A stretch of 64,000 nt of DNA from assembly GCA_038087875.1 (NCBI GenBank), contig CM075977.1:142786001-142850000 (forward strand), given 5' to 3'. This DNA comes from Malacoraja senta. Its lineage: Eukaryota. Below are positions 5,819-60,297 of the stretch, in pieces. Position 1 is the stretch's first letter; the number at the start of each line of letters is the position of its first letter. Both the position numbers and the translations under genes were made by a program. Under the pieces are notes generated by a model. It worked only from the letters and a program-made list of their open reading frames with translations, ran no database searches and was not told the DNA's origin.

Positions 5819-6312
5819 TGACAGACAGGAAGCTGCATGTGAGGCTGGGAAAGCACATCTTGGATCCGCAAAACCTCATCGTAGGAGCACCTCAAGGCTG
5901 CGTACTCTCCCCTCTCCTCTACTCTCTCTACACCAATGACTGCACCTCCACTGTCAAGCTTCTCAAGTTTGCGGACGATACAACCCTGATTGGACTGATC
6001 CAGGATGGGGAAGAATCACTTCCCTCTGGAAGGCGACTCCGGACTGTCAAAGCTACCACACCCAGACATAAAAACAGCTTTTTTCCACGAGTAGTAGCTG
6101 TACTCAATAACCAAAAATCTGTAGCCTCCTTTTGCTCTGGTATTTTATTTAATTCACATATTTAATCAATAATGTTTTATTATTAATGTTTAATGTTTTA
6201 TGTGCCATTCCTAACTGTCACTGTATGTCATGTTGTCACTTGCGGGCGGAGCACCAAGGCAAATTCCTTGTATGTGAATACTTGGCCAATAAACTTCATT
6301 CATTCATTCATT
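5819..6312 (+). mobile_element. Rex1/Babar-type LINE fragment, internally deleted, nested in CR1
   Basis: GAPQGCVLSPLLYSLYTNDC..KFADDTT fused to LPSGRR..KNSFFP; (CATT)n tail. The CR1 sequence rejoins across it (cttgtcc|atttcc). Confidence 0.85.
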
Positions 6313-9563: not shown

Positions 9564-10950
9564 CTCTAACTGAATAAAGCAAGGTTATTCCCTGCATTCT
9601 TCAACTACCACTATTTTCATAATTTATATTGACTAATTTCAGGAAGTCCAAGAAACTTGTGAATGAACTGCTAAGTTTCATTATCATTCCAACTGAGTAA
9701 TACAAACTGGCAATATAGTGTGGAAACAATCCCTTCGGCCAAATTAAGGGACAGAAGTTTAGGGGGAACTTCTTTACTCAGAGAGTGGTAGCTGTGTGGG
9801 ATGAGCTTCCAGTGGAAGTGGTGGAGGCAGGTTCGATTTTATCCTTTAAAAATAGATTGGATGGGTATATGGACGGGAAAGGAATGGAGGGTTATGGTCT
9901 GAGTGCAGGTAGATGGGACTAGGGGGAAGTAAAAAAAACAACAAAAAAGTGTTCGGCACGGACTTGAAGGGCCGAGATGGCCTGTTTCCGTGCTGTTATG
10001 GTTATATGGTAACATGTCACAGCTACACTCGTCCCACCTGTCAGCATTTGGTCCATATCCCTCCAAACCTGTCCTATCTATGTGCCTGTCTGTTTCTTAA
10101 ATGCTGGGATAGTCCCTGCCCCAACTACCTCATCTGGCAGCTTGTTCTATACATCCTCCACCCTTTGTGTGAAAAGGTTACCCCTCAGATTCCTATTCAA
10201 TCTTTTCCCCTTCACCTGAAACCTATGTCGTCTGGTCGTCGATTCATCAACTCTAGGCAGGAAACTGTGCATCTACCCGATCTATTCCTCTCATGATCTG
10301 ATACATCTCTCTCCTATCACCCCTCATCCTCCTGCGCTCCAAGGAATAGAGTCCCAGCCTACTCAGCCTCTGCCTATAGCTCAGACCCTCTAGTCCTGGC
10401 AACATCCTCGTAAATCTTCTCTGTACACTTTCCAGCTTGACAACACCTTTCTTATAACACAGTGCCCAGAACTGAACACAATACTTAGCGTTGTTACAAA
10501 ACTTACCATCAGTGGCGCTCCAGATCTGCCTGCTGCCTGTGCGTGTGATTCTGAAGGCGGCGGGGGGGGGGGGGGGGGCGGCGGGATTAAAATGCAGGTT
10601 TGTATTGGTGGTCGGAGTGGGATTTCCTCGGGCTGCTAGCTGATGAAGAAAAATCGTTTGCGCTTACGTTCCCATTTTAAATATATATATTTGCTGGACG
10701 ATTGCATCACTGGATTGAAGTTAAACACGACTTCTAATGCCTTCAATGCCTTCAACATCATGCATCGCAATTGCAGGTCAAAACAAAAGGTTTGTCGTTT
10801 ATTTAACATATTATCTTGCTTTTTGGTGTGGCTTCATTTTAATATTATGATGCGAAAAAATGTAATTTAGGCCCCCATACGAATCGGCCCTGTCTTGCCT
10901 GCCAATATCGGGGCTTAAATCATGGCAGCGGCCACATTCCAATCAATCAC

Positions 10951-11158
10951 AATCCAGAAACATCCACTCTCAAGATAATCAAATTCATTATTTGTTTGCA
11001 CAATCATGTCATAAGAACATCTAAATCATCTATATTTTGTGTTATTGTCTACCCATGATCAATATTTTCATACTAAATATCCACAGTACAGTTTTAGTCA
11101 GATGTATTGTGCAAAAAATTATGATTTTGATTATCTTGAGAGTGGATGTTTCTGGATT
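10951..11158. repeat. Internal inverted repeat (33-bp perfect arms, ~54 bp imperfect)
   Basis: AATCCAGAAACATCCACTCTCAAGATAATCAAA and its reverse complement ending at 11158. Confidence 0.9.
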
Positions 11159-11529
11159 AATTTATGGGAATTAAACATTAAATTCCTTCCATTTGACATA
11201 TAAATTCATGACAAAGTGAGATTTAAAAATCATGTTATATTGTGAATTCTTGTGTGAATGGGATCAGTTTGTTATTTGTTATTTGGATACTTAGGCTATT
11301 TAAATTTTTTTGCCTTTTCTTAAGAAATGGATAGATGTTTAGATCTAGTAATTGAATTTAGATGAATTTAATTGATTTGATGAAACTGATGAATATGAAT
11401 TTTTTGTTGGGTATTTACTATGTTTTAGCATTTAACTTTATCATTTCTACCTTTTTTCTAAAACTGCAAATAATAACTTAATTCTGTTAATGCTGTTCAG
11501 TATTTTTTTTTTCTTTACATTTTAAACAG

Positions 11530-11872
11530 ATGTCGCCGAAGAAGAAATGCAAAATTGTCAATCCAAATGCCCAGCAAAAGAGACTGATTTAGACAGCATT
11601 CGCAGAGATTATCCAGATTTGGACTACTCCAAATGTGATGATCTACAGGACATTCTTAATGGGAAAGTAGTGGGCAGAAAGGCATGTCATGCGTGGTTTG
11701 AAGAGAAAAAATTGTAGTTTACAATGCCAAAATTTAAAAGTTGAGGAAAAACAAGGTGTACAGAGTTGCTTATTGGTTACAATCTGTGGAGTATGATGAT
11801 GCTACTGATAATGATATGCCAATGTACCAGCTAGCAACTGATCTTCTCCATAAAGACTTGGTCTTTTGCTAG
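11530..11872 (+). pseudogene. Decayed terminal exon inside the transposon encoding a Spin/Ssty (Spindlin-like Tudor) domain
   Basis: Polypyrimidine tract plus cag acceptor at 11529. Reads ..LQDILNGKVVGRKACHAWFEEK / IVVYNAKI*KLRKNKVYRVAYW..MPMYQLATDLLHKDLVFC*, with one frameshift and one internal stop. Domain call is by eye. Confidence 0.6.
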
Positions 11873-13019
11873 AAATTGTAATTTCTTTACCTGTCTGTTA
11901 CAGACTTACAGCATATAATACAATAACATTCAAGTTGTGATCTTGAGAATATCACATTTTTGAATTTTCAAGGCAGTCTGGGTGTTTGTTACTATTTCCG
12001 TCACAACGGCCAATTTTGTAATTAGCTACAATTAGGTAATTAACTAATTATACGCATTAATTTCAGGTCATCCAAGTAAGATGTTTCATATTTGTTTCAG
12101 GATGCTTCAATCTATAATAATTGAACATTTCATTCAGTTCTCTTAATTTTTAGGAAAGTTATGGGCTTTTATCTCAATTGACTGTCCTCGATCACAGCTT
12201 TTGTGTTAAGTCAATGGAAAAGCAATAGGGAACAAGATGCTAATTTCGGAGTATGAAAATTACCATAACTTTTTTAATACTGAAGATATGAAAGTGAATT
12301 AGATATCAAATTAAAGTTCTTTTTATGCTTTGTCTGATGGGATAAATTACAGGCTTGATTTTTAAAATCTCAAAATTTTGTAACATTTCTACAATACTCT
12401 AAATGTGGCCTCACCAATGTTTTATACAACTGCAACATGGCCACCAAACTTCTATACTCAAGACTCTGGCTGATGAAAGCCAATGTGTCAAAAGCCTTAT
12501 TAATTACCTGATCTACCTGCGACTCTACCTTCAGGGAACTATGCACCTGCACTCCTCGATCACTGCTCTACAACACCATCCAGAGACCTACCATTCACTG
12601 TGTAGATCCTGCCCATGTTAGACTTCCCAAAATGCCACACCTCAATTTTTTCTGCGTTAAATTACATCAATCATTCCACAGCCCACGGCCAATTGAGCAA
12701 TCTAATACCCTTGAGCATAATACTGCCCAATTAAACAGGAAATTGGCAAGTTGAACGCAATTACATTTTGCCCATTTAACTTTCCATCTGTATCCAGCCC
12801 ATGTGTTCCAGCTGGTTAAAATTCTGTCCCTTGTCACTGAAATGAGAACATTTAGAAGCATGCAAGGGTAAAGCACTTGGATATTATATGTCATTATGCT
12901 TGAAAATTATATTGCAGTAACAGAACTTATCACAGAAATTCATCGTGATGGGTAATGAATCACAGAAATTCATCGTGATGGGTAGTGATTGGCTCTTTAT
13001 GAACAGCTGCACAAGTTGG

Positions 13020-55332: not shown

Positions 55333-56359
55333 AAATGTTTATTAATTTCCAGGACATAAATTCCGTATCTTTGTCTGAGGTTTCAGTTCAGTTTCAGTTT
55401 TGTTTATTGTCACATGTGCCAAGGTACAGTGAAAAACTTTCTGTCGTGTGCTAACCAGTCAGCAGAAAGACAATACATAATTACAATCGATCCATTTACA
55501 GTGTAAAGGGTCACTCAAACCTAGGTCAATGGGATTGATGGCAGTCAGGCTAAAGAATGAAGAATTATTCAAATATTCAGAGATTAATGAAGTAAGCAGG
55601 TCACAGCTGTTCCACAATCTAGATAGGGGTGAACTGGATGTGCCAGTTAGCCTCTTCCTGAAATGGCAGGGAAGTTAATGGGAAACAATGACCAGAACTT
55701 GTATATACTGCAAACCTGATGCATATTTGATAAAATGTGCAACCTAAAGTTTAAAGAATAACTTACAGAGTTCTGGAAACATTGGCTGGGAATTTCCTCG
55801 AAGCTGCTCCCTCTCCACCGCACTTCTGGAGAAGTTACGGCGGCCTGTTTGCACGAATACACTGGCTGGGTTTAGGAGTAAAGGGAAAACGAGTTATGGA
55901 AGGGAGAATTACATTTGGTTTTAGATCGTACTGTATTTGATGATTCTAAGTTAAAAGGTTAATTACTAATTAAACATCTTTAGTTACTTTTTCTGGAATT
56001 TAACTCACATTGGGGTGAATGGATTTAGAGATGTAAAATGTATTAGAAAATGTCATGAAGATGATTTAGGTTAAGTTTAGTAATCCTTAGGATCGACTCA
56101 GAAATGTTTCATATAAATGGTACAATGGTGGAAAAATAACAGCAGTGAGTGTGATTTAATGAAAAAAATCTAGACATACCAAAAAAATGATTATTTAGAA
56201 TTAGTTGTCAATCCAAAATGCGCAAAGAGAGTATTGAAATGTCTGATGAAGTCTTCATAATTCTTCAAGTGTATTGGAGTAACCTAGGTGAGTAAATGTA
56301 GTACAATGTGTGTATGGTCACACTTTAGCTACTGTGCACCAATGATGGAAGTAATGAGG

Positions 56360-57480
56360 AGTCATAGAGTCAAAGTCATACAGCACAGAAACAGGCTCTT
56401 TGGCCCATCTCATCTGTGATGACTAGGTTTTATAACTGAGATACTCCCATGCCTGTATTTGGCCCATATCACTTTACGCCCTTCCTATCCACATACCTAT
56501 GTAAATGTCTTTTAAATGTTAACATTGTACCAGCCCCTACAGCTTCTTCTGACAGTTCGTTCCATATATACAACAGCCTCTGTTTGAAGAAATTGCCTCT
56601 GTCCTCAGAGGCAATTTCTGAAAGGGGAAAGATTTAATAAAAAATCTTCCCCCTCTCATCTTAAACCTATACCCTCTGGACACCTCTACCCTGGGAAAAA
56701 GACTATGACCATTCATCTTATATACACCTCTTATCATTTTGTGCATCTCTATAAAATCACCCCTCACCCTCCTATGCTCCAGGGAAAAATGTTCCAGCTT
56801 GTCCAGCCCCTCCTTATAATTCAAACGTCGAAGTCCTGGTAACATCCTGGTGAATCTTTTCTGCATCCTTTCCAGCTTAATGAAACCTTCCTATAGCTGG
56901 ATGACCAGAACTGCCCATAAAACTCCAAATGTGACCTCACCAACATCTTGTTCAGCTGTGGTATGATGTCCTAATTCCTGTACTTAATACCCTTTATGAT
57001 GAAGACAACTGTGCCAAATGCCTTCTTTACCACCGTTTATCTGTGATACGCTTTCAGGGAACTGCATAATTGTACCACTAAATCTCTCTGCTGTACAACA
57101 CTCACAAGGGCCTTACCATTTGCTATGCAAGTCCTGCCTTGGTTTAAATTACCAAAATGCAATACCTGGCATTTATCTGAATTAAACTCTATCTGGCATT
57201 CCTCGGCCCACAGGCCCAGTTGATCCAGAATCAATTTGTAAACTTCAATAGCCTTTCTCACTGTCCATTATACCACTAATTTTAGTCACCCAAACTGTTA
57301 ATATAGATGACAAATAATAAGTGGACCCAATGCAGATTCCTGACGCACACCACTGGTCACAGGCTTCCAATCAGAAAAACAACCCCCACCATCACCCACA
57401 GACTATTACCACAAGCCCATTTTGAATCCAGTCATCTAGCTCACCCTGAATTTCATGCAAACTAACCTTCTGGACTAGCT
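56360..57480 (-). mobile_element. Old CR1 RT + 3' fragment
   Basis: QKRFTRMLPGL, FNSDKCQVLHFG. Confidence 0.8.
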
Positions 57481-58198
57481 TGAAAGGATGCAGATGCAGA
57501 AAAGATTCACCAGGATGTTACCAGGACTTCAATGTTTGAATTATAAAGAGGGGCTGGACAAGTTGGAATATTTATGATCAGTGTTTTTTTAATTATGGTA
57601 TGTGTCAGTTGAGCAAACTGGCACCTCTATAAAGTTAAACGTTATAATTATGTTTTCCAACCATGTGACATGTATTTTTATTATTAGCGCATACCAGCAT
57701 CTTTATGTCTACATAAAGATCTCTGTTTAGGATGGCAGATGGTAATTAGATTTATAGGTTAATAATGGTAGTGTAAATCCTTATTGATGGTAACTAAGTG
57801 TTATTATTAGAGAAAGCAAAGCTGAGGTAAGATATCTATTGCACATCTGAAAAATGCCTAAAAGACACAATAAAATGAAGATAGTATTATTTATGATGAT
57901 TGACTCCCAATGCTGCTCTGCATAGTGCGAGAAGAAATAAATCAATTGATTTTGAAAAACAGTAACAATAGAACAAGAGAGCATTAAATACAAAATCAAT
58001 TGATTCATATAAAATAGAATGTGATAAAAATCTCACATATCTTTACTATGCTTATCAACATCATGTCTTATGCCATATCCTAAAGTGGCAAGATGTACAA
58101 TCAAAATTACCTGATAACCTGAGCACTTGAAGAAGCTTTAAACAGATTTAAGGCCAATTGGAAATGAATTCAAGATCATTTGCAGACCTTAGGAAACA

Positions 58199-59694
58199 CT
58201 TGACTAAGTGGGACCCGTTGGCTCCCAGTCACACGGGAGGCCTGGTCCCCCAACGTAACCCATTCCCCAAATCAATATTCTACCACTCCCCCGTTCCCCC
58301 AACACAACCCGTTCCCCCAATGCAATATTCCACCACTCACCCATAGCTCCTAACTGCCCAGACGCGGCTCATTTCCCCTCATCCCAGAGCACTCCCTCTC
58401 TTCTTCATGTGTGGGATGGGAGGAGGGGAGGGTGGGAAGTGGGGTGTGTGGCGGGGAGGGTGTGGGGGGTTAGGGAAGCAGTGGTATGTGTGTGGATGGG
58501 CAGGTGTAGAGGGGGGGGAGAGGGGGTGTAGGGGGAGGGGGGTTGTGGGGGAGGGGGGGTGTGGTGGGGGGGTGGGGGGAGGAGTGCATGTGGGCGGGAG
58601 GGGTGTGGGAGGGGGTAGGAGGGATCTGGGGGGGTGTGGGGGAGGGTGTATGTGTGGTTGGGGGAGGGTGTATGTGTGGTAGGGGGGGTGTGTGTGGGCG
58701 GTGGGTTTGTGTGTGGGCGGGGGGATTGTGTGTGTGTGGGGTGTGTGTGTGTGTGGGGGGGTTTGGGGGGAGGGGTGTGGGGGTGGAGGGGTGTGTGAGC
58801 GGGGGTGGGGTGTATGGGGGCGGGGGGTTTGGGGCGGGGGGAGTTGTGGGAGTGGGGGGGCTTGTGCAGGCGGGGGGGTTTGTGGGGGTGGGGGGGGGTT
58901 GTGGGGGGCTGGGCGGGTTGTGGTGCCGGGGGATTTGTGGGGTCGGGGGGGTGTGTGGAGGGAGAGGAGTGTGTGGGTGGTGGGGTGTGTGGGGGGGGGG
59001 GTGTGTGTGGGCGGGGAGTGTGTGGGAGGTGTGTGGGGGAGGGGGGGTTGTGGGGGCGGGGAGGTGTGGGTGGGGGGTGTGTGTGGGCGGCGGGGTGTGG
59101 GGAGTGTGCATGGGGAGGTGGGTGTGTGTGGGACGGTTGGTGTGTGTGGGACGGTTGGGTGTGTGTGGGCGGGGGGCTTGTGGGGGGAGGGGTGAGCGGG
59201 AGGGTTGTGTGGGGGAGAGGGGTGTGTGGGCAGCGGGGAGTGAGCTCGGAGAAAAGATGGGTGAAGAGCCACGGGGGAGAGGGGGGCATCATGAGGGAGG
59301 GGGGAGGAGCCAGTGAGGGGGACCAGAGGGGTAGAGGCTGGAATTGGCAGTGCAATAGGGACTCACAGCGGGCCCTGGTCATTGGTCATTCTTCTTCGCC
59401 GGGATCAGAATCTCCGCTTTCCCTTTGGCGACGTCTCTGACGCTGGGCTGCTGCTTGGGGCTGGGCGGCTGCTTGGGGCTGGGCGGCTGCTTGGGGCTGG
59501 GCAACTGCTTGGGGCTGGGCGGCTGCTTGGGGCGGGGCTGCTTGAGGTGGGGCTGCTTGGGGCGCGGCGGGGCTGCTTGGGGCAGCCCCGGGGCTGAGCT
59601 GCTTCGGGTCCCTCCGAAAGTCCAGTTGGAAACCTCCGCCGGCCATTCTCAGCTCCAGTAAAGACGCGATGGCGCAGGAAGGGTCAGGCCGTCC
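58199..59694 (-). mobile_element. Helitron-family copy (3' end degenerate) with G/GT-rich low-complexity interior
   Basis: CTTGACTAAGTGGGACCCGTTGGCTCCC matches the 25833 terminus; shares the ccaccactcacccatag motif with ~27775. Right boundary hidden by the gap. Confidence 0.6.
59443..59590. repeat. Minisatellite, 15-18-bp unit GGGCTGGGCGGCTGCTTG
   Basis: About 8 recurrences of CTGCTTG. Confidence 0.9.
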
Positions 59695-59894
59695 NNNNNN
59701 NNNNNNNNNNNNNNNNNNNNNNNNNNNNNNNNNNNNNNNNNNNNNNNNNNNNNNNNNNNNNNNNNNNNNNNNNNNNNNNNNNNNNNNNNNNNNNNNNNNN
59801 NNNNNNNNNNNNNNNNNNNNNNNNNNNNNNNNNNNNNNNNNNNNNNNNNNNNNNNNNNNNNNNNNNNNNNNNNNNNNNNNNNNNNNNNNNNNNN
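59695..59894. other. Assembly gap (200 N)
   Basis: Run of N. Confidence 1.
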
Positions 59895-60297
59895 GTCGAG
59901 CCTCTGCATTCGTCGGAGCTCTCGCCTAGCCTCTCCCAAGACTGTGAGCTCTTGATGGTAAGTCCGCAGGCCGCAGTTGGAGCGATCCTAGGCAAGGGAT
60001 CGGTTCTGATATTAAGTCCGCGCCCCGCGGCGGGGCCCAAGGTCAGTCCGAGGAGGCCTCCAGCTCCATCGATGATAGGCCGCAAAGCAACCGGAGACAC
60101 GTCCCGGAAATATCGCGTCTCCGGCAAGGTAAGAAGATGAAAAATAAAGTTTCCCCCACTCCCCCCCCCCCTCCCCTGCTCCCACATAAAACAAATCGGA
60201 GAACATTTACACAAACTTATAAAAAGCACTAAAAAAAATTTAAAAGACGAAAAAACAGACTGTTGGCAGGGCTGCCAATCGTTTGGGGCCCCTGGTG
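59895..60297 (-). mobile_element. 5' part of the GC-rich non-autonomous family
   Basis: Minus-strand layout (T-rich tract, ttttatgtg, G-run, gggggaaact, tacct..cggag, gcggccta) parallels 32618-32850. Confidence 0.6.

Follow-up and report, generated by a model that had tools for sequence, protein, structure and literature searches.

In a 64-kb window of the skate Malacoraja senta (64,000 nucleotides of contig CM075977.1; coordinates given without a locus name refer to this whole stretch), a 1.9-kb DNA transposon occupies positions 10486 to 12391, with TAG...CTA inverted ends and a 7-bp target-site duplication (TSD), CAATACT. Our analysis indicates that this copy is probably a decayed member of a family marked by such ends and a 7-bp TSD, in which the intact transposase is hAT-like and ends in a Tudor barrel that would serve as a chromatin tether. 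The window copy itself is a decayed, nonautonomous internal-deletion derivative, in which ~16 N-terminal codons are fused out of frame to the last ~98 codons. It is inert and encodes nothing functional; it could only have been mobilized by an intact transposase that acted in trans and recognized its ends. Its value is that it points to the family and shows the ends and the 7-bp duplication in clean form.

The decayed frame described in the first-pass annotation of this DNA was found letter for letter in frames 3 and 2 of the element. When its two pieces were searched separately, neither had a match in Pfam, in PDB sequences (phmmer), or in the Atlas, because both are too short and decayed. Among 1.84 billion representative proteins, the 43-amino-acid last piece had 18 true relatives, the best of which was P0002, with an E value of 4.5e-11; two further matches, P0006 and P0015, were discarded as low-complexity artefacts. 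The 445-amino-acid protein P0007 led to more than 120 unnamed relatives in many animal phyla, with hosts including a sponge, Hydra, molluscs, an annelid, a brachiopod, a sea urchin, a copepod, a hagfish, bony fishes, and the skate Leucoraja erinacea. Among the relatives, 51 have a complete C-terminal domain, which lies 0 to 3 residues from the end of the protein in all but one of them (26-residue tail). The profile built from these 51 intact domains (A1) matched only two pieces of the 64-kb window, at E values of 7e-17 and 2e-13, and the decayed frame is therefore not a chance occurrence. Being the C terminus of transposases in many phyla, the segment is also neither private to one copy nor a host exon that this one copy captured, cases that the first-pass annotation had named as speaking against it. 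A nearly intact relative at L002 (5517 to 8340) has an N-terminal open reading frame (ORF), MPPKKKMKPP.., which ends at 5894 and overlaps the main ORF, 836 codons in a different frame that is open from 5830. The two are separated by one frameshift or a short intron; the whole protein would have about 940 amino acids, and the intact transposase, which occurs in animals from sponges to skates, would be about 940 to 960 amino acids long.

We examined the insertion and its ends with contigs from four public sequencing runs aligned to the element region (the runs include X1, X15, and X24). The two terminal inverted repeats (TIRs), TAGCGTTGTTACAAAACTT and the reverse complement TAGAAATGTTACAAAATTT, are identical at 15/19 positions and share a 13-nt core (inverted repeat I17). 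The similarity of other copies stops at 12391 or 12392, as judged from loose ends in the few contigs listed. Contigs from other copies of the flanking repeat pass through an empty site in which CAATACT stands only once (joint 10480 to 12394, runs X15 and X1); the element therefore interrupts a high-copy-number repeat. Both flanks carry minus-strand ORF fragments of the reverse transcriptase tail of a long interspersed element (LINE), which we take to be of the CR1/L2 type only from the motifs ..LYKTLVRPHLEYC.. and ..MLPGLEGLSYRQRLSRLGLYSLERRR.. in these ORFs. The ends, the 7-bp TSD, and the interruption of another repeat are thus as the first-pass annotation had them, borne out by the TIR match and the empty-site contigs. 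No second copy of the ends or of the transposase was found within the window.

Other copies agree on the length of the duplication. In L. erinacea genomic sequence (CM054019.1, here L008), one copy is flanked by TTTCTTG/TTTCTTG and another by CTATAAG/CTGTAAG, so that a 7-bp TSD is found in 3/3 copies, and the eighth flanking base is mismatched in both L008 copies; the 8-bp TSDs that the first-pass annotation had named as telling against its hATw label were not seen. Copy 1 of L008 (9476 to 12316) has the same 5' end as the window element (91% over 45 nt), transposase remnants from residue ~251 to the C terminus, and the same 3' region (91% identity). As it holds both ends together with transposase remnants, the inverted ends are tied to the transposase gene. 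The L008 copy flanked by CTATAAG/CTGTAAG (55954 to 57107, minus strand) resembles a miniature inverted-repeat transposable element (MITE) and is without any coding sequence; its deletion class is that of the contig joints from 11338-11356 to 12012-12015. The nearly intact L002 element yielded neither a clean 3' end nor a 7-bp flank that matched. Its transposase gene is followed downstream by three tandem ~128-bp units (L002 8700 to 9070); each unit ends with a motif complementary to the element's 5' AGAGGTTATG, and the 5' TAGAGGTTATG.. motif recurs in all three. These units may be subterminal transposase-binding repeats.

The C-terminal domain was modelled from P0003 residues 117 to 212 with alignment A1 (predicted local distance difference test [pLDDT] score, 96.3). 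The model has two helices, a five-stranded SH3-like barrel (strands at 32-39, 42-54, 58-64, 75-80, and 93-95), and a helix before the last strand. The Foldseek list was dominated by Spindlin1/2B/4, SMN, PHF20, SGF29, and Agenet readers, with the SPF30, TDRD1, and SND1 Tudors also among the matches; SMN had the highest sequence identity, 24 to 28%. Among Swiss-Prot models, the match was to Spindlin-2 residues 124 to 189, which constitute repeat 2, and superposition on a Spin repeat gave the same barrel, with a root mean square deviation of about 2 Å over 63 to 68 residues. A structural search independent of Foldseek scored RDM15 at 7.1 and Spindlin-4 at 7.0. When the 51 members were searched singly against Pfam, the recurring families were all of the Tudor type, though weakly matched (BAHCC1-like, PTM/DIR17, Agenet, and SMN), and the nearest Atlas clusters were PTM/DIR17 Tudor and Spin/Ssty, with scores of 0.85 that we treat as a lead only. 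On the model, the assignment of a Tudor fold to the domain is solid and Spindlin repeat 2 is the best single solved structural match, with an RDM15/PTM-type Tudor appearing about as close in the unbiased search.

The conserved residues of the domain were compared with the Spindlin1 pocket. H35, W37, Y46, Y63, W64, Y77, Y/F82, and D87 are conserved in 44 to 51 of the 51 members. The pocket of Spindlin1 repeat 2 is formed by His139, Phe141, Trp151, Tyr170, Tyr177, Tyr179, and Asp184 (PMC8213585), and 6/7 of these would have conserved equivalents in the transposase domain (H35, W37, Y46, Y63, Y/F82, and D87) when placed in sequence register by hidden Markov model alignment and spacing; the pocket classes of the barrel are His, Trp/Phe, Tyr/Trp, Tyr, Tyr, and Asp. 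The domain has in common with Spindlin repeat 2 the pattern G-x-x-[ivc]-x-H-x-[WF] ... [YW]-x-G ... Y ... Y-Q-L-x-x-D ... D-L, within which these six pocket positions fall. It differs from Spindlin in being a single domain, fused to a transposase at its extreme C terminus in the 51 members, rather than one of three tandem repeats, and in carrying ~10 more residues in the loop that precedes the fourth strand. The RDM15 and PTM/DIR17 Tudors, which include a plant H3K4me1 reader, form a plant and protist family without transposase context, and their sequence matches were below threshold.

Several results pull the other way. For this small domain Foldseek returned no match at an E value of ≤0.001; PF02513 (Spin/Ssty) was absent from all 51 members even at an E value of ≤10; the A1 profile reached Spindlin-4 and Spindlin-3 among PDB sequences only at E values of 0.11 to 0.74 (the best, Spindlin-4, at 0.11); and the equivalent of Tyr177 is uncertain, perhaps Y77, because of the ~10 extra loop residues, whose number was inferred from the spacings of conserved positions. 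A specific Spin/Ssty kinship of the domain is therefore best described as unproven. The first-pass annotation had proposed that the parent protein ends in a Spin/Ssty-like module, and had named the lack of any Tudor or Spin/Ssty profile or structural match as grounds for dropping the idea. The core of this proposal is borne out, in that a hAT-like DDE transposase with a C-terminal Tudor fold was found, matching Spindlin repeat 2 in structure, but the Spin/Ssty profile itself was not matched.

The catalytic part was modelled with P0024 (684 amino acids; 40-sequence alignment; mean pLDDT, 87). Foldseek placed the Hermes hAT transposase in the first 11 positions (E values of 7e-7 to 5e-5), followed by the P element transposase (E value of 6.6e-5) and then an IS256-family transposase. 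As in Hermes, a DDE RNase-H-like core is split by an all-helical insertion domain, and the catalytic residues have the canonical placement, on strand 1, after strand 4, and on the helix past the insertion domain. They are invariant where present: D133 in 30/30 sequences, D210 and the CxxH pair C235 and H238 in 39/39, and E490 in 36/36. The family transposase has ~11% identity to Hermes and extends past the Hermes end with a long helix and the C-terminal Tudor-fold domain. The intact protein would thus consist of an N-terminal basic region, a coiled coil, the Hermes-like RNase-H core with its helical insertion domain, the long helix, and a single Tudor barrel. When a full-length model was compared with AlphaFold DB clusters, Bugula-like, sponge, and flatworm relatives (13 to 25% identity) aligned through the Tudor part, and the alignment of amphioxus and mussel structural relatives ended before it; the Tudor domain may have been gained or lost inside a wider hAT-like clade.

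The element's ends also resemble those of hAT transposons, in which the short inverted ends follow the consensus YARNG: the 5' end is TAGCG, and the 3' end, TAGAA on the other strand, fits at 4/5 positions. Two features set the family apart from hAT elements such as Hermes, Ac, hobo, and Tol2, and both weigh against simple membership. Its TSD is 7 bp, not the 8 bp of hAT, and no BED finger or hAT dimerization-domain signature is detectable by sequence; in 10 long members, none of the hAT signatures (PF05699, BED, DUF659/DUF4371) and no THAP or other Pfam domain was found at an E value of ≤0.1, and the family profile matched no transposase among PDB sequences. Repbase includes hAT families annotated with a 7-bp TSD (PMC4455052). 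These same departures, together with the presence of the P element transposase among the Foldseek matches and the fact that some P members (Galileo) make 7-bp TSDs, speak for an alternative in which the family falls within the P superfamily or within a separate one. We consider this quite unlikely, as the P superfamily ranks below hAT on modelled structure, and on that footing the family is hAT-like, though its TSD and sequence signatures depart from straightforward membership. The Dada superfamily was considered for its TSD of 6 to 7 bp and its host range, and was rejected on published features. Dada elements resemble the window family in TSD length, in a DDE transposase with a D/CxxH motif, and in overlapping aquatic-animal hosts; but they have no TIRs, have CCCC and CCHC zinc fingers, and insert only in small-RNA genes (PMC3706591), whereas the window family shows none of these traits, having TIRs and having inserted into a LINE and into other DNA outside RNA genes. 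A 7-bp TSD is said to be typical of the hATw subgroup; in the literature found, the name hATw is used only as a RepeatMasker class, with no description of the transposon family.

Judged from its modelled fold and pocket residues, the barrel would bind methylated lysine or arginine on chromatin; the bound mark could tether the transposase to chromatin, and tethering could in turn bias the integration sites of the element, by analogy with the action of chromodomains in chromoviral integrases. A barrel of this SH3-like kind might instead hold transposon-end DNA or help to build the transpososome. Such a nucleic-acid-binding or assembly role is unlikely: conservation is strongest at the aromatic and acidic positions lining the Spindlin methyl-lysine pocket rather than on a basic surface, the closest eukaryotic structural matches are all methyl-mark readers, and the conserved pocket equivalents are the main reason for favoring a methyl-mark reader over a DNA-binding or assembly barrel. 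The mark could also lie on host proteins other than histones. SMN and TDRD Tudors read dimethyl-arginine on proteins such as PIWI or Sm, and the Tudors noted above among the Foldseek matches (SMN, with the highest identity, SPF30, TDRD1, and SND1) fit a barrel that hinders or evades silencing and does not choose targets, a reading that we hold to be highly improbable. Very unlikely, too, is a direct common ancestry of the Spin/Ssty repeat of animal Spindlins and the transposase barrel, in which Spindlin would have arisen when a reader domain of the transposase was captured and triplicated (or the transposase would have taken up a proto-Spindlin repeat) and the transposase would read H3K4-type methyl marks for the choice of integration sites. 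The suggestion that this one copy picked up a host Spindlin-like exon as its coding segment (transduplication), or that the frame is open by chance, is refuted: the segment sits at the transposase C terminus in many phyla, other copies with matching ends carry it too, the aligned contigs show it to be highly repeated in several species, and it matches the family profile at an E value of 7e-17.

The favored reading, a methyl-mark reader that would tether the transposase to chromatin, has parallels outside DNA transposons. Chromatin-guided integration is well documented for retroelements, and the chromodomain integrases of chromoviruses (Ty3/Gypsy) and LEDGF-tethered retroviral integrases bias integration through a chromatin-reader module. 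The likeness would lie in the proposed logic, a reader module that biases integration; the difference is that those integrases serve retroelements and rely on a chromodomain or a host adaptor, whereas here a cut-and-paste hAT-like transposase would be targeted by an inbuilt Tudor barrel. No cut-and-paste DNA transposase that carries its own methyl-mark reader is known to us, and full-text literature searches turned up none among hAT-like enzymes; searches on Spindlin or Tudor with transposase, and on Tudor with hAT transposase, yielded nothing describing this transposon family. Retention of the Tudor domain from sponges to skates suggests that it is needed in the life cycle of the element. If tethering is true, biases in insertion would be accounted for, targeted gene delivery would gain a natural scaffold, and there would be a concrete test case for how reader domains are exchanged between transposons and chromatin proteins of the host, Spindlin among them.

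Comparison with relatives accounts for the structure of the window copy (Table 1). Its N terminus, MSPKKK.., corresponds to MPPKKK.. in relatives, some full length and one a deletion copy (P0002/L004, P0125, P0133, and the L002 ORF), and L004 aligns to 11509-11563 with 76% DNA identity. At the junction that follows, ~800 to 850 codons are missing, including the whole catalytic core. L001 (a Logan contig) and L008 9476-12316 are 91 to 93% identical to the window but align from no earlier than 11577; before the equivalent position, L001 and L008 copy 1 carry the transposase coding sequence that the window lacks. The first-pass annotation had read the segment as a C-terminal exon spliced onto a transposase. 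This did not hold: an internal deletion has instead joined the first ~16 codons to the last ~98. Frame 3 (11532 to 11714) ends in ..VVGRKACHAWFEEKKL and a stop. The VVYNAKI piece in frame 2 is reached only past a 1-nt deletion near 11706-11712, relative to L001, and is closed by a premature TAA stop at 11735-11737, where L001 has GAA; frame 2 then continues as LRKNKVYRVAYW..MYQLATDLLHKDLVFC to a stop at 11870-11872. Two substitutions distinguish this copy from nearly all aligned contigs, Tyr to Asn at 11810, a conserved aromatic position, and E to V at 11787. The region downstream of the coding remnant is the most repeated part of the family, and common MITE-like forms delete about 11340-12012. 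A contig of another species (run X24, record 26) spans the same 11576/11577 junction, which suggests that the ~1.9-kb form may itself be an amplified nonautonomous subfamily.

Table 1. Features of the transposon copy in the window
Feature	Position	Strand	Basis
Left TSD, CAATACT	10479-10485		Sequence; single CAATACT at the empty site in other copies of the flanking repeat
5' TIR, TAGCGTTGTTACAAAACTT	10486-10504	+	Inverted-repeat search; 91% identity to L008 9476-9520
5' subterminal region, putative untranslated first exon; GT donor CAG/GT at 10776/10777	10486-10776	+	Inferred from sequence
Putative intron of the 5' untranslated region (UTR), ending in a pyrimidine run and CAG	10777-11529	+	Conserved acceptor-like site
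Transposase start codon and first ~16 codons, MSPKKKCKIVNPNAQQ	11530-11576	+	N termini of relatives
Internal-deletion junction, out of frame	11576-11577	+	L001 and L008 copy 1 align only from 11577 on; loose ends before 11577 in X15
Remnant of linker helices and first Tudor strand, ..NGKVVGRKACHAWFEE, frame 3	11577-11714	+	Family profile positions 2-42, E value of 2e-13
Remnant of second Tudor strand, VVYNAKI	11702-11737	+	Frame 2; comparison with L001
Remaining Tudor-fold domain to natural stop, ..VYRVAYW..MYQLATDLLHKDLVFC	11738-11872	+	Family profile positions 52-96, E value of 7e-17
3' untranslated and subterminal region	11873-12372	+	Contig depth and joints; 90-91% identity to L008 11510-12316 and 55954-56323
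3' TIR, ends ..GTAACATTTCTA	12373-12391	-	Inverted-repeat search
Right TSD, CAATACT	12392-12398		Sequence

Upstream of the coding remnant, the first-pass annotation had placed a splice acceptor at 11529. An acceptor-like site, a pyrimidine run followed by CAG, does end there, but what follows it directly, at 11530, is the transposase start codon and not a C-terminal exon. The site is kept in two other lineages: in L002, the pyrimidine run and CAG lie 8 nt upstream of the ATG, and L004 has the same arrangement of run, CAG, and ATG. The arrangement is consistent with a 5'-UTR intron, and to judge from the relatives' sequences the coding region looks near intronless, the sole putative intron lying in the 5' UTR. 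At the apparently corresponding donor place (by eye), L008 copy 2 reads ACAG/GTAAAAG. Telling against splicing, no spliced RNA was seen over 11529, where RNA-run contigs cross the site unspliced; a splice joint at 11529 was also absent among the joints listed from the aligned contigs, which is weak evidence. A poly-G tract of ~20 G residues lies close to the element's 5' end (about 10560-10579). The MITE-like copy of L. erinacea has one in the corresponding position (L008 about 57010-57035), which makes the tract a family feature.

Within the putative intron, a 46-nt inverted duplication (93% complementary) pairs 10951-10996 with 11113-11158. Run X1 has a joint between opposite strands at 10947/11160, and many of the other copies cease to match before 11156. 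The duplication has the look of a fold-back rearrangement specific to this copy, or else of a nested hairpin element. In L. erinacea, the L008 region 10001-47183 is annotated as LOC129703107, whose protein, P0137, starts with decayed transposase fragments that are followed by what appear by eye to be an Ig-like and a transmembrane part; it is either an exonized transposon remnant or an annotation chimera. Elsewhere in the window, the composition profile of positions 58001 to 60000 shows a GC content of 0.57, a very strong GC skew of +0.48, and a negative AT skew.

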